From NCBI GenBank assembly GCA_030704615.1, contig CM060731.1:496001-560000 (forward strand): a stretch of DNA of 64,000 bases, written 5' to 3'. The stretch is from Takakia lepidozioides (lineage: Eukaryota > Plantae > Bryophyta). Shown here one piece after another: positions 540 through 24,549 of the stretch (positions within the stretch are counted from its first letter, which is position 1; each line of letters begins with the position of its first letter). The notes below the pieces were generated by a model. The model saw only the letters and a list, made by a program, of their open reading frames with translations. It was not told where the DNA came from and searched no databases. The position numbers were made by a program, and so were the translations under genes.

Positions 540-800
540 CCTGCGCCTCTGTTCAGCAACTTTCAAATTCTGGAAGCTGAGACTAAAGCCCACGGTCTAA
601 TAGTTGGGCAGCTCACACGCAGCAGATAGATGCTTGAGGGAAGGTCTCAGTTCTAGAGGAAATCTGGAGAGCCCGAAGTAATAGTTTATATGAAGGTAAG
701 TCCAGTATCCCTCACAAAGGAGTGTCTGTTCACTATCGTTTTGCCCAAAGTGGGTGCAGGGTCTATGGCAACAACGTCTTATGAGTACATTTCTCTCTCT
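540..800 (+). mobile_element. Non-LTR retrotransposon 3' end (family A, (CT)n tail)
   Basis: Aligns by eye with 38020-38293 and 38320-38589 (shared AACTTTCAAA..TGAG..TAAAGCCC, CAGCTCACAC..CAG, CCCTCACAAAG, CTTATGAGTACATT + CT tail). Boundaries approximate. Confidence 0.6.
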
Positions 801-2010
801 CCAAAGTAACCTCCCCCTCACGGAATCTGCTTTCCACGATTCTAGCAGCTCCCGGCTCCTCTGCCTTCCGCCTCCCCACTGTTTCCAACCTTTCTGCTTC
901 ATCCAAACTGTACGCGGGGTTCTGTGGCCACAAGGCTACAGCAAGCAACAAATAATGACCACCTCATGCTCTCCAGCGTTTGTCACAGAGTGTACCGTTC
1001 ACAGGCACCTAAGAGAGATCATGATTGAGACCCACGGACACGCTGTGACATTGCTTCTTGTTACATGTAAGAGCCTCTGTCGCAGTTTTAGGGGTGAATT
1101 CTGCGTACAATTTATCAATGTCGCCAGGTAGCTATGAAGGCACCACGCCGGGCTGCAGGGTGTCTGCTGAGGTCTGGGGTCCAGGACTTTACCTCTTACT
1201 TGGAGAAGACTGGCTCATATTCACTGTCGGAGTACCATTCCCCCTATACATCTGGGTCCAGTGGGAGGCACATTAGTGACCCACTACCTATGAGTCCAAA
1301 AGTGTCAGCTCATCCATCATTACAGCATCATGAATACAATCCTCCAACATGCCAAAATTGTCTCCTTGTCCATTCTCTGCGTGCTTTCACCTTGAAGCTT
1401 TCACCTCTTGAAGCATGACACCTTAGTACAAGGCCCTCATAAGGTCTCCATGAAATTGATGGTTACATACACATTGTCAGTTAGTGGTACCCCTACTGGT
1501 ATATCAAACCTGACAGCAGGCCTGCAAGTAGGGTCATGAATCCAATGATCAAGTAATTGAGGCCCTCCCTCATATCAATTTTGTCAGGGTCATAGAGTAT
1601 TTGGGGTCTTTGGCTTTGGTGACCAGCTTGGTCTTGATCTGAGTGCTTTGTCTCTCCACTTCAAAGTGTGTAGCTTTATGGTTTTATTTTCATATGTTTA
1701 TAATTGACTGATGTTTTATGCGTCCCTGTCCCCCTTCTGGATTGCAGGGTGTGCTGCCTTTCCAAACCATAAGCCAAATACAAGCAGAAGGCACAGAATG
1801 ACTTGATAACTCAAGTTGTGTTCACATGGTATGTGTCAGAAATGTGTAGACACAATGTGAAGGCGTTTTGATGTGGGATCTACAAACATGCTCAAGTCCT
1901 GTCCCCTTCCCAGCCATATACCAGAAGAATTACACTTCTGCACTCTCCTCATATTTGGCTCTTCTTAGGCGAAGGTGTATCCCTTCTAGAGTCAAGGTTA
2001 TTGAGAGCTT

Positions 2011-4457
2011 TCAAAACAATGCTTGCACCTTAAGTTCATGAGGCCTTGGAACATTCTGCCACCCAGCAAGGGAAGAAACTTTCTTCATCAGCGATTCATC
2101 GGCATGCTCAAGTGTCCATGTGGGATAGAATTCTTCGACCTGGAAGACCTGATCAGGGTTTTTAGAATGCCCTTCAGCGCCTTTCAGAAAAAGATCTTCC
2201 TCAGATCGGAGGCTTCCTGAGCATTCATGATCTTTGTCTCCAGCCTGCATTACAAATAGATAAGGTTGTTTCCAATAGTCTTCTCGTCAAGCAAAAGCCA
2301 AAAAATCTTGCATCCTTGGCCCTCTTCCTCTGACGTTGATGGTATGCATAAAAGCTGTTGGGAGGTAATCCAGAGGCCTATAACCAACTTTACTACAAGG
2401 GCAGTGCCACTCACTACAATGCTAACAGTCCTTTTTCCACTCCTATGCAAGCGATGTCCAATGGGTGTGAAGATTGGGACTCATGACCAGGGGGAATGTC
2501 GTGAAATCCTCCTAGAGCACACTTGGAAAGGCGGAGTGCATTTGAATTTTACAATGGGCCAAGACAGGAGAAGGGGTAACAGAGGGCCTAGATGATTGTA
2601 CACACCTTCTCAGTGTAGTATTCAAAGGCAGTGTTATGGGAGCCTGCTTCATACACACAACTCTGTGACAAAACCTGTCAAAAAGACCACACAGCTCGGA
2701 ATGTTTACTCTAGTTATAGAGAAGGATAGAAATCACATACACCTGGACTCAAGAGACTAGAAACACACAGACTTGGAGTTTATAGAACTTGGAGCAGAAG
2801 TTTCACAAGCAATGCAAGAAATCTTATGAAACAGGCGATGAGGTAGACCGTGCCCTCAACTCCCCTGTAGCCACATAATTCGTCAATGTTAGTTGAAGGA
2901 AGGCAAAGAAGTGGGAATGAAGATACCTGAGCCTCAACACTGGCACACACAGCATATATGGCCCAGTTTCTGGTGTAGTTGTTATAGAGATGAACTTTCC
3001 CAAAACGCACACGAGGGTGACGTTGCCTGGTTCCATCAAAGAAGCAGTGATGGATGGTGACTCGGATACACCGGTCATCCACATGTTTGGGGTCAGCTCC
3101 AATCAGCATGGTCTTATTGTGGTGTTGAAAGTGACACCTGCGGTCCATCTCACAACCCGTGCAGAAGGAATCACATACTGCACGTGTGTTACATCTTTCA
3201 AAACTCCTTTCGTTGTGAATGCTGAATTTTAACTTTCACATCATGGCAAAACAGTGGGAAAAAGGGTCAAATCATGCAGAGGCATCCTGCAAAAGCCATT
3301 CAGGTCACATTACCTTCAACAATAAAGCTTACACTTTTCAGACTATTTCTACATCATCATGACTCTCCTAAGTCTTACCTTGACACAGTGATGTTAGTCG
3401 ATTGGCGTGTGATATCTATACACCCATCATCAAAATCTGAAATTGAGCAGCGATCAATCCATACATTGTTGGTGTGGGGTTTAATTTGGATTCCGTCTGC
3501 ATCAGGACCCTGGCCACGCTCCAACTCCAAATTACAGATAACCACATGCTCACACTCCTTGAGCTGCAGTCCTTTCCCTGTGATCTTTACTCGCTGGCCG
3601 CGCCCATCTATAGTTTTGTAAGATGAGACACGGCAGTATTTCGATAGAGTTATGGTGCCAGACAACTCGAACACAATCCACAAAGGATGCTTTTGACGGC
3701 ACCCTTCTCGCAAGGTACCTGGGCCATCATCTGCTCCCAACATTCAACGACCCCCACTGTCAATTTCTATAGCGGAACAAAACTTGCTGACCAGGCATCG
3801 GCATTTTTGAGCCGCATGTTAAACGGTGGTGTACAGCGCTTGTGAAGTAATTGAAACGGACTTAGCCGAATGAATTAAAACGCTATAGTGGCGTCGAATA
3901 GGACAAAGTCCTCAAAGTCAGTAAGTAAATTCAAGCACGCAAGAGAATTGTGTGAGGGTGCAGAGCAGATAGGGAATCGAGGCATTTTGTAAGATCGTCA
4001 AGCTATCGTTGGTCTTCAACCTCTCGTTCAATGTACAAGACACTGTTGTACACTTTCCGAGTAGGATTTACAATACATCACATATTCCCACAAAAAAAAA
4101 AAACGTAACAATCTATCCCAGTCTCCATTCTGGCTGTAAGAGAGGCCAGCCAAAGCTGAGAAACGAACCCACCACGTGATAGAGAGACGAATGAGGACTG
4201 TATGAGATTATTACAAAAGGGAACAAACACCAGTCCTCACGCAGGCTCTAGCATTCCGAACTAGCATGAATACCAAAAGGCAGAGGCCAGAGATAAGAAG
4301 GAGAGGGTTTGGATTAACAAGGCGCGCTACCAGCAAGAGAGGTGACACAGTAGACTTCTCCATGAAGTCCACCAATTGCCGCACGCCCAAACCCTTCTGC
4401 AGCACCTGCCAATGCACGCAGATGGCTGTCAACATTTGCGTAAGGCCCCACTTCCAT
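2011..4457 (-). CDS. Pectate lyase-like protein (PL1; At3g55140/At3g09540-like subgroup), 5 exons
   Basis: Exons 4457-4331, 3730-3379, 3137-2927, 2674-2606 and 2244-2011 have GT-AG borders and compatible phases. Motifs: PYANVDSHLRALAGAAEGFG, DDGPGTLREG, KTIDGRGQ, DGIQIKP, WIDRCS..DDG.IDI, RHPRVRFGKVHLYNNY. Confidence 0.93.
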
Positions 4458-5891
4458 CGCCTCCTGATGAGCAGAGAGGAGCTGAGGACGCCCGTGAAGA
4501 TGAAACTACTCTGCCTCTACCTCCCTCTCTTCATCTCCAGACTTGAACTCATCTGATCAATCAAATACCGTATGCAAGAGCACCCAAGTGCGAATTTGAA
4601 ATGTAGGGTCACACATGAAGCAAGCAATCCTTTCTGACACATCGCATAGACGTGGCATACTCCCACTATCACACGGCAGGGCAGCAATGCAACGCCTGCT
4701 GCAGGCTCTTGGCCTGCCTCCGCACTAAAGTATGTCCCAGACACCAAGGGGACAGTGCCGGGGCTGCCCAGCCTCCCACCTGCCCGCTGCGCCACGTCCT
4801 CTACGCCACGCTGGCGCACAAGGTAATGGGAAAGCCTTGCCGTGGGCTCTACTCGGGGACCTTGTCTCCCATATCTCACAAGTATATGGCTCATTGCGAC
4901 AACGTATAGAAGATATATACCTGCAGCAGGTACCTCACCCTGGTGGTTCAGGGTTTAAATCCTGCTACTCTGTCCTGTGGGACGTATGTATTCAGCTCAC
5001 TCTCCCTATTAATTAATACATCTATGGTTCATGTTTACGGTTTTTCTTAGGGCCCGAGTGTGTAGAGCCCACTAGGTACTAACTTAGTAAGTAGCAAGAG
5101 GAGGGGGAAGAGAGCGCGCCTCTCCTTTATACAGTCGGACCTGGCTAAATGTTACCTCTACAAGTGTTAAAAACCCATAAGTGTTATGGAAACTTCTACT
5201 CCCTTATAAAATACACTAGCAAGTGTTAAGTGTATAAGTGTTAGAAAAGTTTTACTCCCTTCTTCATTAAAATGACCCATGTAAGTGTTAAGGGTGAGGA
5301 TAATGGATTAGGATCACGATAAGGCTTGCATGAAAGTAACTAGTAATATCTAAAACAAATCCTCTTGATGTCGTCACAATTTGTTTCTAAAAACCACCAA
5401 CCAATCGTGACCATACCTTCATTAATTCCTAATGACCACTTCCACAAACACAACTTTTACCCAAAACCATCGGCGTGAACTCCGATCAGTGAGGAGTTTG
5501 CATACCATGCATAAAACTTTGAAAAAAGAGGCTACGTTGTAAATGCTACTTGAGATTCAAAGTTTTGCCTACTCATTTCTGTTCTTGCAAGATTACAATC
5601 AATCTGTACCAATGATCTAGTTATGGTAGTCTCACCATATTGAGTTTTGGCTCTAGTATAGTTATGAGGTGACTGATCGGTATGCAATATTTTGAATCTA
5701 GATTTTTAGGAAGTAGTTGTTTAGTATCATTTAAGTTTAGGTTTGAGCAATATACTATGGGGAAGCCATTTGAATTCACACTGGTACAGAAACGAGAAAT
5801 TCTCAAACATCATGAGTTGCTATTGTCAAGCGGTCAGATAATCATCAACCGTGCAATGATAGCTTGGGCAAATTGAACGTTTCATACCTCA

Positions 5892-6045
5892 GCTTATCTC
5901 GAGGTTATTGAAACGAAAAGATTTGTTGGTTATGAAGGTCATCATAAGAGTGACTCTATTGATGATCATGTAGTAGAAACTGTGAGTTTCAAAGATGCTC
6001 TTAGTGCACTTGAGGTTTTGAAGCAATTCTTGGAGCAAAGGCCCA
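5892..6045 (+). pseudogene. pogo/Tigger-like transposase C-terminal remnant, left part (interrupted by the 15.6-kb element)
   Basis: Reads ...VETVSFKDALSALEVLKQFLEQRP, resembling pogo/CENP-B-family C-terminal helices. The frame continues beyond the element at 21648. Confidence 0.55.
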
Positions 6046-6075
6046 AACCCTATTTTAATTAATTCTGGACTTTTG
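6046..6075 (+). repeat. Left terminal inverted repeat (30 bp)
   Basis: Reverse complement of 21614-21643 with 2 mismatches; preceded by TSD CCCA. Confidence 0.9.
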
Positions 6076-6479
6076 GCTTAAATGCGGACTAAATTTAATA
6101 TACATTTGTATTAAATTTAATTGAAATATTAATAATATCATGGTGTAATGTGTGATTGAACTTTGTGAAGTTTCAGGTGATGTCATACTTCTTTAAAAAT
6201 GTGTCATAGAAGAGGTCCATTTGACATTGAAGTGCTCAATGTGAAGTAGCAGTATTGAACAATTCATTGAACGCCCACTTGAAAGTCGAATAAAGGTAAA
6301 TTCCATTGCAGATCATCATGTAAACAAATGGGTCGCATCGAACATGGGCCAAACTCGTACTCTACAATACTCGATACAACTTGCTAGTAATTATTGATTG
6401 AATCTTCATATGAAGCACGATGTTCACATACCACGCCATTGGAATGAATCATGTTTTGGATGTGACAAGGGCAATAAAA

Positions 6480-8100
6480 TATTAGAATAGCATGAAACAT
6501 TCGGAGAGGTACTAGGTTAGGAGGTACAATAAGTTTGGGGTGTGTAATTAGAGAGAAGTGTAATAAGGTTTGGGTTTACAGTAAGGGTAAGGGTTTAGGG
6601 TTTGGATTTAAGACAAACAAATATGATGGACTCACACTCGGTAGAATTAAGACATGGTTGAGGAATTTGATATCCCTGTAATTATTCTATCATACCTTAT
6701 CCAACAAAAGAAAATATTAAAAGAGCATGAAACATTGAGAAGATGTAACATGATAGTACAATAAGGTTTGGAGTGTTACTAGGGTATTACACTAAAGTTA
6801 TTGGTTTATGGTAAGATTAATGGTTAGGGGTGATGGTAAAGGGTAGGGTTTTCGGTTTGCCAGGTTAATAACACTATTGGACAAACAAATATGGAGGACT
6901 CACAGTCGCTAGAACTTGGGTGTGTTAGAAGGATAAAAAATAAAATAAAAAATGGAGAAACAAATATTATGGAAGAGTCGTTGGGCCGAAGAAGTATTTA
7001 GATTGAGGATTCGTCCTTGGAACCTGATATTAAGATACATATGGTTATGGTATGGATACTTCATTCCCATTTGCAAGGGAAGGGTAAGGGTTTAGACGTA
7101 ACAATGGCGTAGGGTTTTGTTTAGGGTTTCCGACGAGGGTTTAGGGTTTGGGTTGAAGGCAGAGAATGGTGAGCATGGTGAGCATACATGCGGAAGACTC
7201 GCACTCGCTACAACTTAGTGTTGTTAGTAAGGTAGTACTAAGCAAAATAAAAATGAAGAACCTAATATTAGGGAAGTCTAGATTGCATCGGACAAGTATT
7301 TAAATGAAATACTCGTCCTTGGAACCTGGTATTAAGATACATAGAAAGCAAAGTTCGATATAAAAAAGTAAGTGCATGTCAATCCATACCAAAGGTAAAA
7401 CCTTGCGCAAGGTGAAGGGCGAAGAGATTTGAATAACCATAAATAGTTATGGTTATGGTATGGATACTTCATTCCCAGTTAAAGGGAAATGGTAAGTGTT
7501 TAGACTTAACAATGGCGTAGGGTTTCCTTAGGGTTTTCGATGAGGGTTTAGGGCTTGGGTTGAAGGCGGAAATGGTGAGCATACTGCCGGAAGAACTCGC
7601 ACTCGCTACAACTTAGTGTGTTTAATATGGTACAAATGGAAATTGGTTACATTGAAGAGATTGGATAACCAAAAGGGTTATAATTATGGTATGGATAGTT
7701 GATTCCCTTGCAAAGGGAAGGGAAAGGGTTCTGGGATATTGGGTTAAGGATAATGTTTAGGGTTTTCTAGTAAGGGTTAGGGTAAGGTTTAGGGTTTCTG
7801 TTTAAGTTACAAAATAGACAAACAATAAGTCTTATGGAAAACTCCAGACTTCGCTAGAACTTAGTGTTGTTAGTAGGGTATTAGTAAGCAAAAAAAAAAT
7901 TGAAGAACCAAATTATGGACAAGTATTTAAATGAAAGACTCGTCGTTGGAACCGGACTAGTATTATAAGATGTAACATGCCTAAATGCATTGTCAACCAA
8001 AACAAAGAAAAAAGCTAGCGAAATGTGAAAGGAGAGAAGGAGAGAAGACATTCAAAACCATAATGGTTATGGCTATGGCTTATGGTTATGATATGAATAG
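6480..8100 (+). repeat. Subterminal degenerate tandem array (about 5 units of 250-400 bp) rich in plant telomere-like TTTAGGG
   Basis: Anchor motif GACTCRCACTCGCTASAACTTAG recurs near 6629, 6897, 7196, 7595 and 7840. 7041-7230 is close to 7448-7625. About six perfect TTTAGGG and many variants (TAAGGG, TTTGGG), all on the + strand. Confidence 0.8.
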
Positions 8101-8823
8101 ATTTGGAAAGAGAAAATGGCGGTATATAAACGACTTTTGGGAAGCGCCTGGATCTCATGGGAGAAAATGGATCTGAAGAAACATGAGAGAGGATAAAAAA
8201 TCAGACCACCAAATAAAAACTATGAGAAATAAAAAATGCTTAAAAGTTGAACAACGGAAAAGGACATGTGAAATTCCTCTTAAACTAGGGCCAAAGATTA
8301 GAAGTATGAAAAATGAAATGAAATGAGAATTTGGTGCAGAAAAGTCGTAGAGCGCTAGAGGGAAAATGGAGGAAAACCTCATAGAAAAAACTGGGGAATG
8401 GCAAATAAAAATTGTATGTCAACAACGATTGAGTAGGCTCCCCCTAGTGGGAGACTTCAGTGGGAGAATGGTTATGCGAAAAGCAAGTCCAATGTTTCAA
8501 AGAAGGACTGGAAATGGGCTATTTTCTTCTGTTGTTAAAAACCTCTTTGACCAAATTTGAAAGACTCCAGTGGGTCATTGCTCGACCATGTTGTTTTTGT
8601 GATGTAATATTATGTAGGCGAAACTCCCCCACAGGGTCATCTTTGTACAGGACGTACAGCAGGCCAACATCCAGCAAACCAGAAAAAAGGACGAGAACGT
8701 CACTGGACATTCGAGGTTCAGTGCGACAATAAGAAGAAAGAAAAAATGATCCCCAAACGCAAACAAGAAGGGCCATATAGGGAAGAAAAATTTATTTTTT
8801 AAATCGAAGTACTGGAGTTGACC

Positions 8824-11800
8824 TCAACAATATGTCTTTGGTCTGGAACTTGCTCGCACGACTCGTTTTCTGATGAGATTAGCCTCCTCCAAATTAGCGC
8901 GCACCTTCACTGCCTTCGGCGGCAGTTATTCTCTTAGTGTTATTCTTGTCATATTTTTCGTGGAGGCATTGTCAACAACATTGTTCACGTGGACCATTGA
9001 GAAAGATCTGACGAGTTATACTCCCAAAGTTTTGACCAACAATCCCGTTACCTTCCAAGTCTGTTGGGTTACCACCTTTTCTCGGTCTCCACCACTCCAC
9101 CTTCACCTTCTTAAAATAGGATCCTCCCTTTCGCAGGATCACGTCAGATATTGCAACCCCATCCAGACGGGGCACGTACTTGGGTCATAAGGGCGAACGA
9201 GCACAACAAAAAACCCTTTCTCAATATCCTTGAACGGATTCAGGGATATTCTTGGTCGCTCACACCTCGGGCCACAGTAAGGTTATAGGATTTCATCCTC
9301 TTCTTCACATCTGGCAATATATGTGGATGGATTCCATCTTGTGATGATTCTTGGACCAATTTGTTTTCGGCCAGAATCTCAAGAAGCTGGAATACGGTCG
9401 GGAGCTTTCTGGAATTGGCTTATCCAGCTCGGCGAGAATGTTTCCCAGTACTGGTCGTATGTTCTATTCGACCTTTGTAATGATCGTCAAGCATTTCTCA
9501 TTCCTTCGTCCAAAAAATCCCTGTATTTTTTTATTCCATTATTAAATTAATGACTATTTTTTGGAGGAGTCGTCCCCGACTCCCCAGATAGGTCTCCTTG
9601 GAACGGCATCTGGGTGTCCTTCACGGAGCTTCGGAGTCCCGTCAGGATTGGACTTCCACATCTTCACGCTATTGTTTGTTGTGAAGCCAATCCGAATCAG
9701 TAGCGGACTTCTTGTACTTCATGACGGGAGCCATCCGCATCCTTAAAAAAAAGGAAGACGTGCATTTCCGAAATCCCGACCAACGCCTCTTTTCCATCCA
9801 GAATACAGCCCTTGACAAATTCTTGAAGTCGGGAACCTCCTGAATAATCTGTGGAATGAACTGCAGATCTTGCGAGGTCATAAAAGACCTCATCAAATCC
9901 GAAAGAAGAATGTAGGTTCTTCGTTCCTTAGCTTTTCGAAAGGTAGCTGAAGAACCCGTCGATGTCCTCATGGGGTGTCCGACCATTAGGAACCCTAGCT
10001 GGATTTCTTCAAAAACATCTTTGGGGTCAGGAGGGATAGAAAAACAAGCATCCATCTGGTCTTATTGTCCTTCGCAGAGTTGTCCATTGCAAATCAGTTT
10101 TCTCGGAGAGTGGAACGAGCACCACGTTTGTCTTCGGCCTGCAGGGTTTAAGAGCATCCAAACATCTTGATTTACGTCTTAAAAGTGATTCGAAGAACTC
10201 GTTTTGAAGTCGGTAATCGAAAATGTTCCTGACTCGCGACAGGTTTGGCTCTCCAGCTGGCGCAGGCAACGTGCCAAGAACCAATTATTAAAAGTTTGAA
10301 TTTCCCTTCCAGGACTCAAGAGAATACTGACCGTAAGCTCCATCACCGTGTCCGTGCGTGATCATTCCCGTTAGTGAAACTGGAAGCTGACCCAATCCAG
10401 AGAAATCATCTTATTTGGAGTCTGTAGCTTGGAACAGCTGTTTTTCCTGATGTCCATTTTGTCGTGAATAATAAGAGAGAAACTCCTCGGAATCATAACA
10501 GACTCATTCTTCCAGCTATGGTACAGTCTTCTGCACGACTCTTGGTGCCTCAAATGTTTATCAAGCGTTTCGTTGTGTGTCACCTGTTCCGCACTTCTCT
10601 TGACAAATTCTGATCAGGTCCCTGAACATCTCACACACCGTGCACTTCGCAAATGTACTCCGATTTTTACGAACCTCCACGTTAGGAAAAATCCGACTCC
10701 GGATGCGGCTAACAGCCGACTGCGAGACTCCTTCCAACCCGAAAAGTTTGTTGGTCTGTTACAATAAGGCAGGTCAGGAAAGGAACGTCCACTGGACAGT
10801 GGAGGTAGCAGTTCATGAAGCTAGAACATAGTCGAAAGAGACAAAACGAAGGGAGGATCATTCACATTGAATCAGAAAAAATATCCAGGAAAGAAATTGA
10901 AAAAATGGAGATTTATACCTCGTTGGACTCGTCGGTATTCGCTTCCAGTTCATTTCAGGTGGTAAGAACTTTCAAAGTATCCCTCCTCCCTCCCCAATGA
11001 TCTTGTCTTATGGGGCATGAGGTCAGTTTTCCGTTGACAATGGACATAATGTTACCCTTGCCTGAAGCGTCCTTGGGCGTGGCCTCTTCTCCACGGTTCC
11101 CATGGAGACTTGACAACCAACCCTGTTTACTCAACTTTTTGTACTCCATGTATGTGGACCTGCCAATTCCATGAATTGTCCACCAAGCAGTCTCACATAC
11201 ATCCACACCCTCAATCGTAACATATGCCTGCGAGAGAGGTCCCTTCCACCATGTGAAGTCGTTTCGAAACAATCAGTCCGTGTTCTTTCCTCTCATCGAA
11301 AGTCCAAAAAAAAGGTACGGATAGCCAAGGGTTTTCACCAATCGAAATATTGACAGCAGTGAAGTCTGCAGCAAGGTTTGCTGCTCACGGACCGGACTTC
11401 CTCTAGAGTAAGATTCTTCATTTTTTTTTTGGAGTGTTCAAAATCTTGATCCCTCTTCTTTCTCGTTAAATGCCGATACGCCCCTTTCTTACACTGCTCG
11501 TGTGATCTTCGTACAAGATACTGTCAGAGGATCTAATAAAATTCTCCAGATCATTTGAGAGTAGTTTCCCACTTCCAAAAGTCGTGTTTTTGTTAAGGCC
11601 ATTTTACAAGAGACATCAAAGATCCAGAACTCCAGAAAGTATTCTGGTGACAAGAACTCCAACATCGTCCTCTTCCAGTTTGTCATTGAGGATCACCTCG
11701 TCCGGAATGCAGGCTTGAATCCTCCCCTCGAATAGTGCACCCCCATCATCACCCAACAGTACGCATTGCAAGTTTCTCCAGTTGATTCTTCCGAGTCCTC

Positions 11801-12264
11801 TGCTCGGATTCCCGGAACTCTTCGATGGTCTGTGGTTTGATTCATCCTCGTCATCGTTAGAATTCTCGGCAGTATCTCTTGTCTCCGGCATAAAATCAGG
11901 ATTCATGTCAGGCCCTCCTTGACACTCGTTATTCTCCGCCAGAACTTCGCCAACATTCCACATCACCGAGGTCCCAATGGCTCCTTCAAGGTGTCAGCAT
12001 CCATATGTCCATAATGAGAGAGGACATAATGAGTGTGCTTCGTCACAGGAGATGAGAACTACTGAAATGGTTGAGGAAGATAACTGTTGTCCATGACAGG
12101 TCCCAACCCTGGAGACATTAAGGCAGTCCCCAGTGGCTACTGGAGATGAGGACCGGGGAAGAGTAAGAAACACTCTTTGACCCGTCTCTAAAATCATGAT
12201 CACCGAACCCTCCACTGCACACGCGAGGTTCAAGAGACTGGAAACCCCTCAGTGACGACCTTAC
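8824..12264 (-). pseudogene. Sola-type DDD transposase (DUF7869-like), intron-containing, many 1-bp frameshifts as assembled
   Basis: Pieced across frames: CC..HCC, VCETAWWTIHGI, intron 10918-10756 (GT-AG), STFAKCTVCE, IIHDKMD (about 10452-10470), QLPVSLTGMITHGHGDG, MDNSAKDNK (about 10060-10087), FEEIQLGFLMVGH(T)HEDIDGFFSYLSK, then FVVLVRP..PVWMG..VKVEWWRP. Stop at 8824-8826; 5' end approximate. Confidence 0.85.
10783..10808. repeat. Element-internal 26-bp palindrome copy (in transposase intron)
   Basis: GAACGTCCACTG-GA-CAGTGGAGGTAG inside intron 10756-10918. Confidence 0.85.
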
Positions 12265-12419
12265 TGACAGTAATAAGCAGTATGAGTGAAGACTCTATTC
12301 AGAGATGAATCAATTCAATAAAAGGAAAATACACTCGCGTATGAACGTTTCAGAGAAGTAGAATAGAAATGGAATTGTGTTGGTCGGGAACATGTCATTT
12401 GAAGATTGTGTCTAATTAT

Positions 12420-12445
12420 AAACCTCCATTGTACAGTGGAGGTTA
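12420..12445. repeat. Element-internal palindrome copy (probable 5' UTR intron of transposase gene)
   Basis: AACCTCCATTG-TA-CAGTGGAGGTT; a half copy follows at 12548-12565. Confidence 0.85.
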
Positions 12446-12879
12446 GATGAGATACAGATGAAAAAGTCAGACGGATGAATATTAGTGGATGAACATCGTT
12501 ACGTGGATGAATAATTGTAATGACGGATGGATGTGAGCATTGTCGCGACTGTCCAGTGGAGGTCCACGACTTCAGGTATAATGAAATACAGAAATCGGAG
12601 AGAATTGGACTGTAATTTCTAAACATGCAAATGACAAATAAGTAGATTTTCTAGTAGAGTATAGAAAACACATAGATTTCTTAACATTTTCTAGGGTGAA
12701 AATGCAGTTCACACGAGAGATTATGGAAATTCAGAGAGTTACACCTGCGATGGCCGCAGAGGTACTGGATGCTCAGAGAGGTGCAGTATGGGAAGCGAGG
12801 TGGGAGATGACCAGAGAGGTGCGGGAAACACAATCTGCAAGTGAGAGGTATGGAGATAGAAGTTTGAACAGTTTGCACT

Positions 12880-13620
12880 CAGACCTTATATAGAGGTGGA
12901 AACCAGGTTGCCCGCTGGAACTCCTCCAATGGGATAGTGCGATACATTGTCTCCCGGATCGATTTCCGTCGCCGTTGATATCCGGTATGACCACAATCGA
13001 ATGGGTCTGGATGGTGCAGGAGTGCACTCTTTGACTGATTTCGGAAAAGAGTGTCATTTACTGGTAGATCCCTATGTAACAATTATGATGCCAGAAAGAT
13101 AACGGCCGATAACGGTGGTTCAATGGTCTCGCACTCGTGCTTATAAAGCAGTACGTATATTTTCGCATTCAATGTTGTCCAAGTGGATGATGGCCTGACG
13201 CCGATGACAAGTTGCAGCTATGACACTCGGCCGAGAATGCGGCCAGCGTAAATGAGTGACAGTGGAAATATTCCAAGCCTTAATCCGCCGAATGTAGACA
13301 TGGTCAGGAGCAATTATTCCCGCGGCAAAACGCCGCAAGAGGATCTGACTTGTACATTTCATTTATCGTCACGTGGGGGGTGTGGGAAATATCCCATGGG
13401 GTTATAATTGATGATCCTGTGCAAGGGATCATTAACGTCATATTTTCTCGTTCATTCATCTATTTTTTCATTTCATCTACTCATTCGTAAAATGGATGGA
13501 TAGAATGGAAAGGATGAATTGGATGATATTTGCATGGATGTTGGATAAAACACGCGCGACCGTTCGATTTCGAAAGGACGCGATGGTTCAGATCCTTTGC
13601 GACGGCACCATATAAGGGCT
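12880..13620. promoter_or_regulatory. Putative divergent promoter between transposase (-) and cargo gene (+)
   Basis: TATA-like CTATATAAG on - near 12885-12893 and CATATAAG on + near 13609-13616. Each is followed by a UTR-like exon and a GT donor (about 12743 on -, about 13971 on +). Inference. Confidence 0.45.
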
Positions 13621-15488
13621 GTGGTCGTTCAACCAACTCTTTCGTCACTCCATTGTGTACGCGGAAGCGCTGCGGAAGTGGTAAGACCGAGTTTAGCGCT
13701 AGAAATAGAGAGTTTTGAAGAGCGGAGAGCTGAAGAACAGAGACTGGTTGTGCATGGTGCCGTGAGTGAGAGCTGAGAGAAGAGAGCGTGCAGTTCAGTG
13801 CAGCGTGGAGAGTGCAGTGGAGGAAAGGAAGCAGACAGCGGATTCAAGTGCAGACAGGAGAAGGGAAGGAAGCAGAGCGTAAGGGAGAGCGGAGCGGAGC
13901 GGTGGAAGCTTAAGGGTCAGGCGTTTCAGGTCAGCAACAGAGGCACCGAAATGGCTCACGCATCTAGCAGGTAATGTTCTCGTTTACGCATGTGGTTTGA
14001 TGTCATTTCTTTTTGCTTGCTTGTCATTTCTCTATTCTCTTTTGTTCTGTTTGTTGATTTGTTTTTCTTTTTGTTTTGATGTTGTTTGTTGGTCAGCATC
14101 GCCCACGTCGCTGTTGTTTGCTTATCTTCCTCACTCGCTTTCGTTCCAGGGTTATAGAGCACCATTTGATTCTTGCATGCCATGTTTCGTGAGTGTGTTG
14201 TCTGTTGATGCGGAGCATCTCTTTTTCATTCATGTGGCTCCAAAAGCTGTTTTCATTAGTTTGAATTGATTAAAGTTGTTTAGGTGTTTCAATGCATTGC
14301 TGCTTCTCTGCTGGTGGTTTGTATGGTGGTTTGTAAGGGTGGTTGGTATGGGTGTTTGTGGTCCTGGTTTACTGGTGCTGCTGGATTATTAGGGTTATGG
14401 ATTAGGGTTATGGTGGGTTAGGATCATGGTTTTTAGCGATTGTTTTTCCGAATTTCCGATATTTGTCAACGGATTTTTCTTCGGGGCTAGGCAACTCTAG
14501 TAGACTAGTATCCATAGACACTAGACCCTCTACTAGACCTCCATAAACTCCGACGGACAAACCACACGAACCTCGCTTGCCCAGTGGAGGGTTCTGCGTG
14601 TTACTATGCCAAGGCACAACATAAGGATGTATTGAGATAGACTTATGTGGTTCCTCCCCTGCGTTGATTTTTGTTCTGTCAGTTTAAGAACGGGCGTAGG
14701 AGTTCACCACGGTGGCCAAAGATGGTTTGAGACCGTCGTCGACATCTGTAAAGGCCAAGGAGATGGAATCCAGTAAGCATCAACGAAGCAGAAAACCAAG
14801 ACGAATCAATGGTTGTATCGAAAACAAAAACCTTCAAGAAGAGATTTGAGAATCAAATATCAAATGTGGGCTCTGACGTGCGAACCTTCATAAATCCGGG
14901 CACTGATGAATCAATGTTCGAGGGAGTTATTCGACAGGAGACAACGGAGGAAACAGAGGAAGAGAAAGATGAAAGTGATGACTGTAATCTTCCGTCTGAT
15001 TCAGATAATGACATTTCTGTAGGAGATAGTGAACAGTATTCGGGATCCGTCCTTGCCGCTCTCCAGGATACAGTCTCACTCTCCTCAGTATGCAGTCCTT
15101 GTAAATTCTCCAGAATATGTCCCCGCTGATTCTCCAAGAATATGTCCCTGCAGATTCTTTCAGTACATCCCTGGAGTTCTCCAGAATACATCTCTAGAGA
15201 TTCTCTGACACATACACCTAGAGAGTACTCCCTGAAAACCGTGAGGATGATTCGAGAGAGCCTCTTGTAGTTACAAGAAAATGAAAAGATGAAACTCATC
15301 TTACAAAAGAATATCGATTTCTTATAGAAATTATATATTTGTTATAGGAACAATTTTGAGACCGCATGATGTATGGAGTGGCGAGACGAGCCTTCTCTGA
15401 ATTAATGTATTATTCTTCTTATAAGTGAAATCCTTTTCTCCTCCTGAATTGAACTCTTTATCTGTCAGCTATGAGCGTATGAATTGTT

Positions 15489-15513
15489 GAACCTCCACTG
15501 ACAGTGGAGGTAC
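15489..15513. repeat. Element-internal palindrome copy (probable cargo-gene intron)
   Basis: GAACCTCCACTG-A-CAGTGGAGGTAC, just upstream of a probable AG acceptor at 15530-15531. Confidence 0.85.
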
Positions 15514-16590
15514 AGTCCTGGGAACTTGTAGGGTTGTCATGATAGATGTGTCTGAGGACGAGGGTGGTTTGTTCTGTGGACAACAACATTACCCGAGGGA
15601 TGGATTGTTGGAATGTGCAAACTATCTGTGGTTCATTGTTTCTCGAAAATCTCCGAATTTCAAGATGATCACTGGCAATTTTGAGCTGAAACCGGAGATA
15701 ACACAGAATGGGGCATTTTACCGTTGGCACACTCTTGGACCATAAGTTCCGGTTCCATACAAGATTGGTGCAGAGGTCACCGAGCTCGATATGCAGATGT
15801 GGTCGACCTAGAGCTGGAGATGGATGGAATTTCCGATGTTGGTAATGTTCATGATGGAAGATGGTTAGATTTCCCATAACGTTTGGCCTTCAAACTGGAG
15901 GTACGAATTTTGAGGAAGGCCATGTGAGAGAGTCCATTCAGGCGGGTTCACATATTGCAACGAGGTACTCAATTTACAGATGAGATTTTGTATGGTTTGG
16001 GGTATCTTGGATGTGCTTTACTTTAACGGCAAGGAGCTGCAAAGACGTGGGAGGAGGAGGGCAAGAGCGAAGCCAAGAAGGGAAAACGGAAATCCATTGA
16101 CGACGGTGGTGATGACAATGAAGCCGGTACATCAGGGCGGGAAAAAGAAACAAAAGAAGGAGATGGATCTTGCGTTCATGACAGAACCAAAGAACCCAAG
16201 GCTGCAGCAAATTCGACAAAGACAAGGTGTAAAGAAGATGCTAGAGAGGCTGGAAGCAAGACTACAAGAGACTGTTCCTTTTGGGTTTGAGGGAGACCCA
16301 AGACGTCAAAGGTTCCTGATGGAGCTTGCTCCCAGAGATATATGGTGTACAGGCCCTAAATGTGAAGCACAAAGATGGGTCAAAGCGCGTTTTTACCGAG
16401 GTTCGGGTGTTCGACTCCAAACATCCAGTTTATTTGATTACACGCAACCCGAGAAGCCATGGAGGTTTCTAGTTCGAAACCTCGAAACTGGAAGGAGGTG
16501 GAAAATTCCAAACTGCTTCGTATCGATAGACAAACACGATCATTGTTGCCAAGGTAAATTTCCCGACAAAATCCAATTTTTGTAACAACA

Positions 16591-16615
16591 GAACTCCACT
16601 GGACAGTGGAGGTTC
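16591..16615. repeat. Element-internal palindrome copy (cargo-gene intron 16554-16681)
   Basis: GAAC-TCCACTG-GA-CAGTGGAGGTTC followed by ATGAAC. Confidence 0.85.
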
Positions 16616-18976
16616 ATGAACTTAAAAACAACATGCTTGTTAGGTCGATATCATTCTGACCTTATTTAAGTTCTGTCGCAGGAACTTGTGCAAGACATTA
16701 GACGACGACAATCTTAAGAAGTACTACAGACTGGCCTCACAGATTATATGGTCAAAGGATTTTTGGAGGCCGTGAATCTATCTAAGCTTTCAACGACCCG
16801 AATACGGCGCAGAGATTTGACACAACATTTCCGAGAAGAAATTGCAATGCCCGAAATTTTTCGAGCGGGGGGGGGCCGGAAAAACCGGTAAAAAGTACAC
16901 AATCACCCACAACGAAGTCGGAAGAGGAGACTAGACAAGAAGGTTAAATGATTCATTGTGTTTTCGTTCCTTTTGATAGAGAACCAAAATATCTCAAGCT
17001 TGGATTTATGTGACGAACGGAGAGCACATTACGAAGCAGAAGACAGTTACAAAAAACCTTCATAAGGGACGCGAGAGGGTGCTACAATGAACGAGCGGGA
17101 TGGTTTTCAGCATTCGGAAATTCGACATGATGGGGGTCTTTGTAATGTGTCCTTGTTTGGTAATGAGTGCTTGTCCAGTTCTTATTTTACCAATCTATTT
17201 AGGTTCATCCACATATAACAGTTCCGCAAATGGCCGCAAAAAATACTTGAAACATTCATATGATCATGAGAAACGTGAGTTGTTGTGCGGAAGAACGCTT
17301 CCAAAATCTCTCATGCTCATTGGGTTTTTTCAGGATTTTCTAGGTACACCTTGGAACTGTTCCTGGTGGAGAACATGAACAGATTGGACAAATTTGACTT
17401 GGAGGAGCATCGCATTCCGAAGCAGGAGACGCTACAGAAAGAGCTTCAAATTACAAGGCACAACAAGATGGACGAGAGATGAATTCACAATCGAATCATC
17501 ACTTGGTGTATATAGATAAATTGACAAGATGTTGTGATTATTGTTCATCTCAAGATTAATATCAAATATTGAATGAAATTTCTAACTTTGGCCCTGATAT
17601 TTATTGTAGGAATTTATGCAAGCATATCAACTCATACTGGAGATGAGTAGCGTGAAAGAGGCCATGGTTCTGGTTCTCTGTGATGAAGATGTATGCAACC
17701 TGTGGAATGAGGTTTTCAAACAGTGGGAACAAGGGAAGCTTTGATATTTTCGGGATTCAGTGCAAGGTGAACAGTACCGCTGAATAACCGCTATCGTGAA
17801 ACTGCAAGGACTTAATAGCAGGTATTTGAAAGAGAGGGCGGAGAAAATCCTAAACAGATCATTTGCATTCGGGGAACGAAATTCAAGGGCGCGGACAAAT
17901 CCAAAAACACAATGAGCGCGTATATTGACCAAATGAAATTGCGACGGTTTACTATCAATGATGTAATGGAAGTCTTAGGGTGGCCTCGGAAGAGCAGACA
18001 GAACCCGGAACCGTATACCAAACAAGAGTGGCGTGATGTTAAAAAAAAAATACAACTTCAACAAAGCTGAGTTTGAAACATTTCGAGATAGGTTCGGGAA
18101 CGACTACATTGTTAATAAACAGAAGATGAATATGGAGACGCAGCCAATGACTGTTGCCTTCAAGAAGTATGTCTTGTCGTGCAAGCAGACCTTCGAGGAT
18201 AACCAGAATGCCCTGGCGATTCTACGCACGAGCTTCAGGTCCCATTACACACAGCTAGGGGGGAACCAGAAATTTTCTGATGCCATATCACGGTTGGGAC
18301 TTGCACCAAAGAATCGGTTCGACGACATATCCATGGTATTCGTCAATACAGTTTGTGATGATGACTCTGTTGTCTTCGAGACAAAGGACTACTCAAATAT
18401 CTTGGATGCTTTTGTAGCTCAGCAACTCATGTCCAGTGCTTTTGTGTTTTTCTCCACACAAGAATCATCGGGAAATCTTGTGTCATACATCCGGAATGGC
18501 CCTGGATCAAAATCGTTTATTATCCGACAGGGTTATTACATTCCCGGCGAGTTTGAATCACCTTACAAGAGCTGCACGACTATATTCTCCCGGACGGTCC
18601 TCTGCCTCGATTACGTATTTCCGGCAACAGCTGAGGAGATGGTGAATCCGTACGACCGCATTCAAACTGTTTTGGTATCGCCGGACCCAATTAATCCCAT
18701 TATCCAAGGACCAGATGTAGACCCGACCTCGCAGGAGATGGAGTGTAGGACTTACAATCATGAGCTGAGGCCAGACACCTACGATTACCTGGTTTTTTTT
18801 TTGGACGGGATGTCTTGTGTGAACATTTTCGGAGGACTGGCAATGACATACGTTCTTCTTGTAAGTGGATTCTGCATCTTGGAATTGTCTGTGTTTTCAG
18901 TTTCCGGATTTAACTCTCGTATTATTGACGTTGTCGGAAAAGCGTGTTTAACCTGTGTCTGATTGTTCCATTTTGT

Positions 18977-19002
18977 TAACCTCCACTGGGCAGTGGAGGT
19001 TC
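18977..19002. repeat. Element-internal palindrome copy (cargo-gene intron 18861-19140)
   Basis: AACCTCCACTG-GG-CAGTGGAGGTT with perfect 11-bp arms. Confidence 0.88.
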
Positions 19003-21613
19003 ATGTTATTGGAGTTGTGGGTGTTTGGGTGTTTGTTATTCTGCAAATTAGTGTAATTGTTAGTTGTCTCAAAAGAAAGCCTAACCCTTTCAATCTATCG
19101 ATGGTTGGTGTTCGTCGGATTTATTTTGATATCATTGCAGGAAAGAAATATTCGTGTGCTCGACATAAACTTTGTAACAAAAAAGAAATTTTGTAGAAGC
19201 AAGGTGGAGGCCTATTTCAGGACCCTCCAGATTGACAATCAGACTATCGCAGGAGACGGAGATGACGGAGACTCACTGCAGGATGACGAAGTGGACGAAG
19301 AAGATGATGACGAAGAACACGACAAGGATCAGGACGAGGAAATGGAGGAAAAACAAGAAGAGGACGAGGAGGAGGAGAAAGACGAAGATGAGAACATGAA
19401 AATCGTCAACGGAGTCCAGGGGAAGATGCGGCTAAGAGAAAGAGAAAGAGAGGGCCAGGAAATTGCACGGTTGGATAATCTAGGTAGTACTCCAAATACC
19501 CAAGAACGCATTGCGCCACAAGATGTACACAATCTGGACAACTCTTCCTCCAGTTCCGATAACACCACGAATAAGAATCCGACTTCTCCAGGCGGACAAG
19601 AAGCGACATCGACGGAGTTAGTTGAAACCCTCGGTCAAGGGTTCACACCTGTGGAAGGTGACGAGCCATTGATTATGTCACCGGATCCCATTAACAATCG
19701 TCGTGAGTTGGTGTCCCAGAATGTCACCCAGGATCTGGTTCTGGATGTAGGTAACGAATGACAATTAGTGAAAGTTTATTCATACACACTTCTGAATACA
19801 ATATGACAATATTGTAATTATACATACTTGTGAGTGGAATAATCCGAATGTCTACTCTTGGTCCTTTACAGTAGTCCATTGTCGGGACACTTATGTCTCC
19901 GAAAACGTAGAGGTTACTCTGAAACTAAAAAACACTACATTGTGTTGTTTCTGACGGTAGAAACACTTAAATTGCGCAGGTTGATATCGTCCATCAACCT
20001 TCATTTGCAACATCGGGGAAGAGGAAACGGATGCTGTTAATATTGAGTGTCAACGGTCTCCTTTGCTACCGGCCACCTCCAACCGGCGGTGAATTGTTTG
20101 TTTCAGGAAAGTTACAGTTAATGTTCCCGAAAGACCTTTTGTGGTTCCCCGGCCCGGAGTCTTGGAGTTTCTCAACCTTGCGTTCATACATTTTCACGTG
20201 GCGATCTGGTCATGTGCTGAAAGACATGTTCTTTGTAGGATGCTCGAGTGCTTAGTTCCTACGAAAATTGCGAAGAAGTTTTGCTTCATCTGGTCAGCTG
20301 AGGATTGCAAAGACACTACCGGTTATATCATGCCTGGGATGAAATATCTCGTTAATGATATTCGCACTGTTCTTGTCAAGTACCCTGGTACACCCTTTGC
20401 AACGCAGGGACAAATACTCATTGTTGATGATGAGCCATCAAAGGGCCTCCGAAACCCACCAAATACTGGATTCTTCCATATTTCATACAAGCCATCACCA
20501 AAGGGATTGGTTGACCAGGATGATATGTCAAAAGTTGTGTGGCCATATATATTGAAAATGGCTGCAGCTTCAACAGTCGTAGATTACATCAGCGAGAACC
20601 CTGCCAAGTGTTCTCGTAAGCCTATTGGTTATGACCATGCCTATTGGGCTTGGTATGGAGGATATGTTGATCCTCATGTTTGGATCCCACAACAAAAGGA
20701 ACCTGATTACCTTGGTATGTACTTATCCTACTGTTTGTTGTTTATGGAGAATTTGATCTTGAAAGTGTCTTCCACTTGCACTTTTATTTTATCATTTTTT
20801 CTACAAATGTTCCACATTTCAGCTGACATTTGTCATATGAAAAATTGTTTTGCCCAGTCACATTCAAGGAGCAAATTCGAAAAGAAGAAGAAGAGCTTCG
20901 TGATTGGCAAGAATGGCGGGCTTCCCGGCAGGCTTCAAGGGCATTAAGAGATTCAACAAGTAGAGTTCCAAGTAACATTTCGGATGATAATGTTACTACT
21001 AGGTTCGAGTTCTCCGAAAGTATTTCCGTTTCATCTGGTGCGGAGACCGTTGCAAGTGGTTGTGGTAACCGGAGGCGTCTTCGAACACATGCTTTGACTG
21101 CGAGCCGTTTGGGAGGAGGCTCTGTAATATTAATGGGTTAGTGTAAGCCATTGTATGGCTTCGAGCCGCTGGATAACATTAAGTCCAACGGATGTACAGT
21201 TGACGTTACATTAGGTCTGACTGCAATGCCAAAATTGCAATCTCTAATAAAATATAAATGTTTATCATCAATGTATGCGGACACATTCTTTCATATCATC
21301 CTTTTCATCACATGCCATGATTGTTCTATGTTTGGTTTTGTATGTCATCTGATATGACAACCATTTTCTGCAAATTTTTTTACATATCTGACCTCACATC
21401 ATGGTGTAATTTATTGCATCCTCCCATTTTTTTTCGTGAACGACAACTTGGCAATGGATGTTCTTCTAAAACCACAATACATACTTATATTGTCTCCAAA
21501 AAATGTTTGGAGGATTATATTGTGTATAAAATAACCAAAATAATCATATATATCGCTTTATTTCAATAATAAATTTTGTTTATTCATATTTCTCATATTA
21601 TTTCTGGACCAAA

Positions 21614-21643
21614 CAAAAGTCCAGAATTAGTTAAAATAGTGTT
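21614..21643 (-). repeat. Right terminal inverted repeat (30 bp)
   Basis: CAAAAGTCCAGAATTAGTTAAAATAGTGTT followed by TSD CCCA. Confidence 0.9.
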
Positions 21644-21759
21644 CCCAATGAAGTCATGCCATTTATCAAAAGTGTCTGTGCATTGGAAAAGGAACTGGAA
21701 ATTTGGTGAGTAGGAGACTCTCATCAACCATGATAGATTCATTTTTCCAACATGCATAG
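21644..21759 (+). pseudogene. pogo/Tigger-like remnant, right part
   Basis: Continues the 5892-6045 frame (RP|NEVMPFIKSVCALEKELEIW*). After a shift it ends in Q.TMIDSFFQHA*, a PIP-box-like QxxIxxFF tail typical of pogo transposases. Confidence 0.55.
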
Positions 21760-24549
21760 ATTGATGCCAGGCCATCTCAGTTAGGTCCATCTCAGTTAGG
21801 TGTGATACTCACCGCAACGCTAGCTGATCGATCAATTTATTTTTATAAGTGTTAATTTTAATGACCTGGTATTTCATATGTGTTAATTTTGTAAATGTTA
21901 AAGATTGCCGTTGGAAACTTCCTAACTGTTAAACTATTGATACTCTATTTCTGTTACGTATTTTCCTACTCCCAACCCCTACCACTTAGCCAGATCCGAC
22001 TATACCTCCATCATAGTGCTATTTAATGCTTTGGGATTTGTGATTTGTCCTTGAGGTACAATTTAATGAGCAAGGGAATGACGGCCGCCGTGGGCACAAG
22101 AACATAATGACGGTCAGCAAGCCTATTACCCGGATTCCATTACCCGCCCTAAAAGCATCCACACCCTTGAGCTTGAAAGGCTCTATGTAATGCCAAAGAT
22201 AACGTGATAGATTCAGGCCCTCTTGGATTATGTGGCAGGGTAGTCCTAACTCAGGCACAGCCTTGACTCCTGAATCCCCACACTATTCATCACTTGTCGT
22301 TTCCAACCCCGTTCCCGTATGCTACCCTCTGGCGTTCCCATACTGGTCGTCTTGTGGTCTCTGGCAAGAAGCAGGCTCTTTGATACGGTCATGGTCACGT
22401 TGACTTAGTTTTAGTACCAGGCTCAGGGCATTGTACATTGTGCTACATTGTGCTCGGGTTCATGGCTCCGAATGACATATAGTGCCCGCCCTTTATGGTC
22501 CATAGGGTTTCAAGGGCAATAGTGTGGACGTTTTCAGCCCATTCCGAATCTATATCTCGCCAAATTCTGTTGGCGGGCTGGGTTCAGTCTAGGGTGTGGA
22601 AGCTCTAGTAAGGGTCAGATAAATGCTGGTGTATTACCCTTCATCCGGGTCCGGGGGAAACATACAATGTATGCTTGATAAGGGTCCGGGTATATATGGG
22701 TAACCTTACCTGGTTATATATGGGTAGATCGTATACCCACTCAACACTGGTATCTACACAGACATGAACATTTTGTAGTATGAATCTGGTATGAATACTT
22801 ATATTGTGGGCTATATATGAATATGCTATTGGCATTGATTTTTTTTAGTGATACTGGGGATATATAAGCATTGGCATGGTATTTCTTAGTACTGCTCACT
22901 ATACATAGAAATAAATTATGTCATTAAGCACACAGCTAAGTGTAGTCTAAACTATGGAACACTAGGCAAAGGAAACCCGTAGCATGAAACAACAGTGAAA
23001 GGCACATGAAGTCTGAACTGCAGCAGGGAGCTTTGAATTAACAAAATGGTAGTACAGATTTCGACTAAATCATACTTATATTTCTTACCTAGCTAGGTTC
23101 AACCAGGTATACCGGTCCAACACTAGTAGAAAAGCCAAAGACAATCTTCACAAAGTGTGAGAGGAAAAATCCTTGATTAGACATAGGGTGCTTTGTAGGT
23201 GTTTTTCTTTTATGGGGAGGGGTGGGGTGGGCGGGATAAAAATGGGCTTCTAAATAGTAGCATGTCTCCAAAGACTCACCCGTCCCACATTAATGTAATT
23301 CCACAATCTCCACGGTAAGGAAGTGACTTGGCACACCCCTAAGGTGCTTGTAAGAAAAAATGGATCCACTCGCTAACTTGTCTAAAAATTCAGGTAAAGG
23401 TAGATGACAAGGTTGACATTGATGAGACAATGTGGTGGCCCACTCATGGTTAATGCCAGAGGACATGGAGTATTTTGTCGGAGGACCAACGAATTTAGCT
23501 CTTCATTAGCGTCAACTACCTAGTTGGCCCACCTTGTGCAGCTGGACCATGGAACACAACTTGCGACTGCATTGGGATCGATGTGGGGATCTTGGCAGCT
23601 TGACTTACATCAGTCCTTATCCCGGGGGTTACTTGCGGCTCCAATGCAAATGCACTCCCTGTCCAGAAAAAGACGAGGTCAAGTATTGAAGAACTGTATT
23701 GTGAGCCTCCAAGCAAGCCTATATCAAACAACTCCAAGGAGTTTACCATGCCTATATAATTGAGCAGAAGAAGGAGGGGGAAGAGCATAGAGGAACTAGA
23801 AGAAATCTCAGTGTAGAGTCAGCTAAGGCATTTCTAAAACCACGAAACTTATTATATCTCCAAAGATAGGTAGTGTGGTAGAGTCTCTTTATGTACTTAT
23901 AAACCAAAATCTAAATCTTCCTCACAAATCCACCATATGGACCTTAACTCTTAAAAGCAATCATTGATGTTACGTTGAAGACATATATACCTCCACAAAG
24001 TTTGCTGCCATACATGTATCTTTGGGAATGAATTGTCAGATAAATTGGCATGACTTAGAGCTATACAACTCCTTCTTGCTCATCCAACAATACCATCCAC
24101 ATAGCACACAAGTACTTATCCCTTTTGGCTATCATCTACTAAGGCTACACTCCTGAAACAGCCCCCATACAATATATATATTCAATCTTGCAGAAGAAAC
24201 CGAAGAAAAACTTAAAACTCGTACACTTATACACAAACATACATATGCAAGTGGGTTATCTTCTACATAACCAGCTATTCAACCATTTTTGGGTATCCAA
24301 AGTAGTAACTGATGCACAAATTAGACAATCACTTAATTTGATATGAACAATAGATGGACAATCAAGGACCGTCTTATTCTAACAAACATTGCACATTGTG
24401 TCATACTTACCCCCCAAATAGACACATGGCTACATCTTCTATTACATTGCCATATGCACCCTAAATTAGCGTAGTGGTAAGGTGATGGTAGAGTGGCGGC
24501 GAGGTGCTGGGTTTTGATTCTTGATGGGTGGCTAATAGAACTCCAGCTA

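Follow-up and report, generated by a model that had tools for sequence, protein, structure and literature searches.

The Element and Its Insertion Site

We analysed a 64,000-nucleotide stretch of the genome of Takakia lepidozioides (contig CM060731.1, positions 496,001 to 560,000), here called the window, in which a first-pass annotation made from the letters alone had placed a giant Sola-type transposon. At this locus lies a 15.6-kb element bounded by 30-bp terminal inverted repeats (TIRs), complementary at 28 of their 30 positions, with the tetranucleotide CCCA on either side (Table 1). Between the TIRs a Sola1-type transposase gene occupies the minus strand and a longer, multi-exon accessory gene the plus strand, the two being divergently arranged. 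The repeats, the perfect CCCA duplication and the divergent gene pair had all been described in the first-pass annotation and are borne out; what it did not state is that both genes are broken in this copy.

Among target-site duplication (TSD) lengths of 2 to 11 bp, 4 bp was the sole one that fitted, as judged on this one copy. When the element was excised in silico and one CCCA removed, a reading frame was rejoined across the junction (FLEQRP running into NEVMPF), which independently confirms the element ends. The interrupted open reading frame (ORF; 5900-6045 and 21648-21710), which we take to resemble the C-terminus of a pogo/Tigger-like transposase, is itself decayed, and according to the reads this flank is also repeated.

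Four public sequencing runs, of which X1-X3 come from one sample, were aligned to positions 17250-23150, a region that takes in the right end of the element. The resulting contigs cover the whole second gene, and their summed depth falls about 30-fold just beyond the right TIR. Three contigs depart from the reference at 21643 into mixed sequence (0.56 agreement), representing dispersed copies with different flanks. In X1 the contigs of the unique flank have a depth of 65-72 and the main family contigs one of 966-1621; in X3 the figures are about 9 and 122-210. The flank contigs show zero differences, and the family depth is about 14-25 times that of the unique flank. This ratio suggests very roughly 15-25 close copies, contig depth not being strictly equivalent to copy number. 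The window copy differs from the family contigs by about 1-6%, and the family retains a splice acceptor at 18803 that the window copy has lost. No RNA run contained this stretch, a result without bearing on its expression. The further copies envisaged by the first-pass annotation are therefore seen at their right ends, with the second gene and distinct flanks, while the 4-bp TSD derives from a single copy. The element in the window is a real but dead copy of a multicopy Sola1 family.

Table 1. Features of the element, in window coordinates.
Feature	Position	Strand	Remarks
Left TSD, CCCA	6042..6045	none	
Left TIR, 30 bp	6046..6075	+	Starts AACCC; in a contig of run X5 a variant left inner sequence comes after the TIR, with a loose end at 21614
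Degenerate G-rich subterminal repeats	6473..7953	+	Units of ~230-400 bp, 69-83% alike; scattered telomere-like words
Sola1-type (DUF7869) transposase pseudogene	8880..12185	-	~1,060 codons; motifs IIHDKMD, MDNSAKDNK, FLMVGH..EDID
Transposase intron, GT..AG, 163 nt	10756..10918	-	Holds one palindrome; absent from most homologues
Palindrome copy 1	10786..10805		In transposase intron
Palindrome copies 2-4 (12209, 12423, 12543)	12209..12562		Upstream of transposase coding sequence; two in probable 5'-untranslated-region intron 12264-12744
Accessory gene with many exons, divergent; may be two or more genes	13950..21141	+	Frameshifts, stops, lost splice acceptor at 18803
Palindrome copy 5	14571..14590		Probable first intron of accessory gene
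Palindrome copy 6	15492..15510		1-nt spacer; probably non-coding
Putative ParB-like domain	16250..17506	+	Assigned by its place when compared with the genes of Riccia and L305, and by motifs recognized by eye; no significant profile match
Palindrome copy 7	16593..16612		Intron ~16554-16681
Helical region	17610..18067	+	Weakly homologous to Riccia and L305 accessory proteins (independent E-value 0.05)
Putative degenerate beta-class N4C/N6A methyltransferase fold, three exons	18250..19260	+	VFVNTV at motif IV site, NIFGG at motif I site; profile match non-significant
Palindrome copy 8, perfect	18980..18999		Intron ~18862-19140
Acidic low-complexity linker	19240..19750	+	
FCP1/NIF-like HAD domain	19981..20716	+	Pfam PF03031, E 3.9e-7, over gathering cut-off
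Right TIR	21614..21643	-	Depth drop and mixed loose ends from 21643
Right TSD, CCCA	21644..21647	none	

The Transposase

The transposase of the window copy carries about 20 frameshifts and six stops and so cannot yield an active enzyme. Single pieces of it gave a weak match to DUF7869 (E 0.018), and a homologue search with one piece returned no match. A degenerate form of the transposase motif, searched in metagenomes, retrieved intact transposases of about 1,070 amino acids that Pfam assigns to DUF7869 at E 1e-47 to 1e-50; the motif was not found in the viral contigs searched, nor did the TIR pattern occur in the metagenome contigs searched. The intact proteins share 33-35% identity with the window transposase over nearly its full length (about 12185 to 8880), and the nearest relative shares 46%. 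In a by-eye comparison the order of the motifs is that of the curated Ectocarpus element Sola1-1_Ec32, unlike that of Sola2. Ectocarpus Sola2 has GGCGG termini and a DGCAxQYK-type motif, whereas the window element has AAC termini and MDNSAKDNK, and a Sola2 identity was rejected. On these alignments and motifs we classify the transposase as Sola1-type (DDD/E), as the first-pass annotation had proposed.

The Accessory Gene

The sole significant domain in the accessory gene of the window is the NIF domain. Its catalytic DxD(xT/V) motif is missing: the window has LSVNG, as do two other loci, L003 and L306. Because the DxD nucleophile motif is replaced by SVN, the domain is probably a pseudo-phosphatase. 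In L306 the last NIF domain reads LSVNGLLCY, identical to the window, with two pieces matching at E 1e-15 and 2e-6. Along the repeat at L306 6001-8437 the catalytic motif decays by degrees, reading DLNG in the first NIF copy and SVNG in the second. On the minus strand of L003 (9800-12330), a locus probably associated with peat moss, lie three tandem NIF-like remnants, the first keeping DLDG and the third having SVNG; a DUF7869 gene has its catalytic motif some 9-12 kb away, and the remnants and that gene may belong to separate elements.

For the rest of the protein the searches were run exon by exon, which limited their sensitivity. An exon of the helical region (17646-17741) was the top match to a Riccia/L305 profile in all 128 kb of window translation, and the frame at 17979-18650 gave a weak, collinear alignment to the N-terminal half of the Riccia methyltransferase. 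Frameshift-aware scans of the window with Riccia and L305 exons scored no better than shuffled queries, though the top matches of two Riccia exons were collinear within the accessory gene. This similarity is suggestive of homology, short of proof. The parbN and mtN profile sets were negative, as were homologue searches with the NIF piece, and a search of the accessory core against 1.84 billion representatives found no true homologue, its single match (P0001, at L001) being a spurious repeat protein. Atlas searches gave weak leads only.

Relatives with the Same Layout

In the quick tree that we calculated, the window transposase was represented by one exon read through with X at the breaks, and it sits on a long branch. 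Its nearest relative is transposase P0097 on contig_2542 of ENA ERZ25039595 (SH-like approximate likelihood-ratio support 100), a contig that provides our loci L106, L305 and L306. Here the divergent gene (L305/L306) encodes an IGGQH ParB-like motif, a helical region, acidic repeats and two NIF domains. The same layout recurs in Riccia sorocarpa (locus L100), where a DUF7869 transposase is accompanied by a divergent gene whose product has the motif ISGQH and a helical region and ends in a beta-class methyltransferase. The two accessory proteins have the GQH motif in common, and their helical regions are homologous (z 8). The Riccia methyltransferase domain was recognized by Pfam N6_N4_Mtase (E 0.0012), by hhalign (90%) and by a phage methyltransferase hidden Markov model (HMM), and has M.RsrI as a match. 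It keeps a good motif I (DFFSGG), whereas motif I is degenerate in the window and in L305, and in both of these an intron comes next, at matching positions. At the site aligned by eye, the (D/N/S)PP(Y/F) motif is missing from all three plant proteins, which read VNTV in the window, DLTHP in Riccia and VCPF in L305.

The transposase and the accessory gene are thus inherited together in the window family, in Riccia and in L305. A dedicated accessory gene travelling with the transposase had been predicted in the first-pass annotation, and this prediction agrees with the multicopy family in the same species and with the layout of the nearest transposase relative and of Riccia.

Other observations concern these loci. 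The Riccia element also contains another gene, situated beyond the downstream end of the ParB-methyltransferase gene and truncated by the locus edge (L100 1-1329, minus strand), and a duplicated ORF of about 165 amino acids upstream of the transposase (L100 9295-10462, plus strand). A locus with the DUF7869 motif, L054, has TIRs of more than 200 bp and spans about 9.4 kb (~200-9630), a complete element of a distant lineage. Twelve bp at the end of L306 resemble the window TIR; they have no partner at the other end of the contig and were not counted as a TIR.

Family-Specific Palindromes

The element contains its own repeated palindrome, as had been noticed from the sequence at the outset. Seven sites match the consensus CCTCCACTG-NN-CAGTGGAGG with at most three mismatches, where 0.03 would be expected, and every one of them lies within the element; an eighth copy, with a 1-nt spacer, lies at 15492. 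By the inferred exon model, the palindromes sit in introns or upstream of the transposase. Other elements have palindrome families too: Riccia has about 30 copies, including some in the introns of both genes, and L305 has 35, of which 33 lie outside the called genes. The sequence of the palindrome differs from element to element while the sites are mostly non-coding and often intronic. The type of site is conserved and its sequence family-specific, like VANC targets and parS sites.

Six further loci (L016, L059, L077, L101, L102 and L103) each have a distinct repeated palindrome of their own upstream of a DUF7869 transposase, even where an accessory gene was not detected.

CpG Content and Subterminal Repeats

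The median observed/expected ratio of CpG is 0.77 in the element (15 bins) and 0.40 outside it (48 bins; Mann-Whitney p 1e-7, neighbouring bins being not fully independent), and the step is visible at both element ends. The Riccia element has ratios of 0.8-1.07, compared with 0.23 in a neighbouring stretch that holds a remnant resembling a long terminal repeat (LTR) element, and L305 has 0.6-1.0 across its genes. Transposases without a detected accessory gene have ratios of 0.18-0.39, a comparison that is confounded because these come from other hosts and short contigs. The CpG retention fits a long-term escape from CG methylation, as might be expected of a VANC-like anti-silencing activity.

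Telomere-like words occur at 4.2 per kb in the subterminal repeats and at 0.19 per kb elsewhere. The first-pass annotation had spoken of a telomere-like subterminal array. Of this, the degenerate repeats and the enrichment of telomere-like words stand; the term array is overstated because Tandem Repeats Finder detects no tandem array in the subterminal region and the relatives are barely enriched in such words, on which grounds a true telomere array at 6473-7953 was ruled out.

A Proposed Self-Recognition Function and Its Alternatives

We propose that a recently amplified Sola1 family of a non-seed land plant carries an accessory gene that belongs with the ParB-methyltransferase genes of algal transposons. 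The ParB-like part of the protein would bind the family's own palindromes in the manner of parS, and the degenerate methyltransferase fold and the NIF domain would act without catalysis, keeping host cytosine methylation off the element and/or favouring transcription, as VANC does for VANDAL; the NIF domain may engage the C-terminal domain (CTD) of RNA polymerase II. The window copy, being dead, could be served in trans only. The exact ends, the 4-bp TSD, the multicopy family, the co-inheritance of the two genes, the palindromes, the NIF pseudo-phosphatase and the CpG retention support this proposal, that is, recognition of the palindromes through a ParB-like domain, non-catalytic shielding from silencing and possible action of NIF on the polymerase CTD, and we rate it the most likely reading, with about equal chances of its being right and wrong. 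A wider formulation is more tentative, and we would sooner expect it to fail than to hold: a self-recognition module of non-seed land plants, in which a ParB-like clamp for intronic palindromes is fused to a pseudo-methyltransferase and an FCP1-like (pseudo)phosphatase, may shield the element from 5-methylcytosine and tune RNA polymerase II. Plants would then have two anti-silencing systems, the present one having no kinship with VANC, deriving from prokaryotes and occurring with several transposase superfamilies.

Several results weigh against the proposal. Neither ParB nor methyltransferase was detected in the window exons with Pfam, PHROG, NCBIfam, a 164-sequence phage methyltransferase HMM, hhalign or PDB searches, and ParB lacks profile confirmation even in the proteins of the relatives. 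Two structure predictions were of low confidence (pLDDT 32 and 37). Because the profiles were negative and the fold predictions unusable, both assignments in the window rest on the relatives. Youth or origin of the family could also explain the CpG retention. At L101 and L107 palindromes are present and an accessory gene was undetected within about 10 kb upstream, so that the transposase may itself be the binder.

The last point bears on a different account, in which the palindromes either serve the transposase as binding sites or arose by local expansion of a repeat, and the second gene was captured as passive cargo in the Pack-MULE manner. The palindromes upstream of transposases without detected cargo (L016, L059 and L101-L103) and the low similarity between the cargo genes speak for it; yet three distant elements have kept one domain order and orientation, three sources share the change to SVNG, and in all three elements palindromes lie in the introns of the cargo gene itself, and we consider passive cargo quite unlikely. 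The accessory protein could instead be a transposition cofactor comparable to CACTA TnpA or MuDR MURB, compacting or synapsing a 15-27-kb element through the palindromes and having no role in chromatin. ParB is known to load as a clamp at palindromic sites and to bridge DNA. Such a role would suit the unusual length of the elements and the degenerate catalytic motifs of both enzyme-like domains. However, the palindromes cluster at promoters and introns, away from the ends, and the CpG retention and the NIF domain are left unexplained; what is more, published cassettes of this kind have passed between transposase superfamilies that are unrelated, which would not be expected of a partner tied to one transposase. 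We regard the cofactor role as unlikely.

The accessory protein of intact copies might also be an active N4C/N6A methyltransferase that marks its own element. The same has been proposed in print for the algal proteins, the Riccia motif I is good, and plants can use N4-methylcytosine (Marchantia DN4MT1). Against this, the absence of (D/N/S)PP(Y/F) from all three plant proteins, in the by-eye alignment, and the degenerate motif I of the window and L305 make an active enzyme very improbable. That the whole is a composite of unrelated fragments between chance TIR-like matches might be suspected from the two broken genes and from reads covering one end only. It was rejected as scarcely credible in view of the frame restored at the empty site, the exact read breakpoint at 21643, the single palindrome family across both genes and the CpG step at both ends.

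Other Features of the Window

Outside the element, the minus strand carries a single-ORF PLS-class PPR-DYW gene (56103-59414) with 6.4 near-identical 303-nt triplets. PLS-class PPR-DYW proteins with such triplets are typical of RNA-editing factors in non-seed plants. Together with the plant telomere word, this gene indicates a non-seed land plant as host. A multi-exon gene, also on the minus strand (28700-36000), resembles by eye a CRM-domain chloroplast splicing factor, and its introns share a small mobile repeat with 29958-30042, 30958-31017, 51123-51188 and 54633-54717. Inverted repeats of 65 nt, 1,083 nt apart (47646-48858), may mark a miniature inverted-repeat transposable element and adjoin a fragment resembling a long interspersed nuclear element (47080-47601). 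At 52697-53462 a cluster of direct and inverted repeats, with 81-nt units and a 54-nt hairpin with GGGGCCC cores, is perhaps the end of another TIR element. One repeat family is dispersed in both orientations at 554-960, 27941-28143 and 37900-38600.

Comparison with Known Systems

The first-pass annotation knew of no description of this architecture; it had mentioned a report of Sola1 in a moss, and Physcomitrella Sola1 (Bao et al. 2009; Repbase Sola1-1_PPa) is indeed listed in PMC9033089. The claim to novelty of the architecture is refuted by two published accounts (PMC12477816; 10.1101/2025.02.11.637652): the giant two-gene Sola1 arrangement has already been described, in algae, since Sola1-1_Ec32 has an opposite-strand ParB-methyltransferase gene. 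This Ectocarpus element is 21.5 kb long with AACCG termini and a 4-bp TSD that tends to end in A, and of the Repbase entries it matches Sola1-1_PPa of Physcomitrella best; its opposite-strand gene encodes a 1104-amino-acid ParB-like/N4C-N6A methyltransferase, whose suggested role is to bind the element that encodes it and to modify it (Dinatale et al. 2025, PMC12477816). The window element resembles it in being a giant Sola1 with AACC termini, a 4-bp TSD, the same transposase motif order by eye and an opposite-strand accessory gene. It differs in that the host there is a brown alga, the TIR is 282 bp rather than 30 bp and the methyltransferase is predicted to be functional; the accessible text of that paper reports neither a NIF domain nor palindromes, the accessory gene being compared by description only (PMC12477816).

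The Plavaka PAG1-3 cassette of Bostrychia and other red algae is found in DNA transposons of 17-19 kb with ParB-like and PF01555 methyltransferase genes and inverted-repeat arrays beside the ParB gene, and moves among superfamilies (Petroll et al. 2025, 10.1101/2025.02.11.637652). The likeness lies in giant DNA transposons with inverted-repeat sites and with accessory coding sequence whose ParB-like and methyltransferase parts are putative in the window. There, however, the transposase is of EnSpm type, the ParB and methyltransferase genes are separate, with fusions to a 2-oxoglutarate oxygenase and to SET respectively, and NIF is absent. With the FCP1/SCP (NIF) CTD phosphatases the window element shares the PF03031 match, with DxD replaced by SVN. 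Literature searches, conducted largely without subscription papers, turned up no report of this form in land plants, nor of its NIF domains, its degenerate catalytic motifs or its intronic palindromes. What appears to be new is that the land-plant versions add phosphatase-like domains and seem to escape DNA methylation.

For the algal ParB-methyltransferase genes a similar role has been proposed. The land-plant versions offer matched pairs of protein and palindrome in several lineages, a CpG footprint and relatives of transformable models (Riccia, Marchantia and mosses), which makes the anti-silencing hypothesis directly testable; if it is true, sequence-specific anti-silencing tools could follow. 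The window copy, being dead, is useful only as a pointer to its family. VANDAL/VANC is the one system in which a protein made by a transposon has been demonstrated to bind and unsilence its own sequence (10.1101/2025.02.11.637652); it comes from Arabidopsis, where the protein was shown experimentally to act on non-coding motifs that differ between families, with loss of methylation (PMC5735166). The likeness to the present element is that of a working model, both having family-specific non-coding motifs, here known from sequence; the transposase is of Mutator type there and DUF7869/Sola1 here, and no sign of homology to VANC was seen, though no direct test for it was made.

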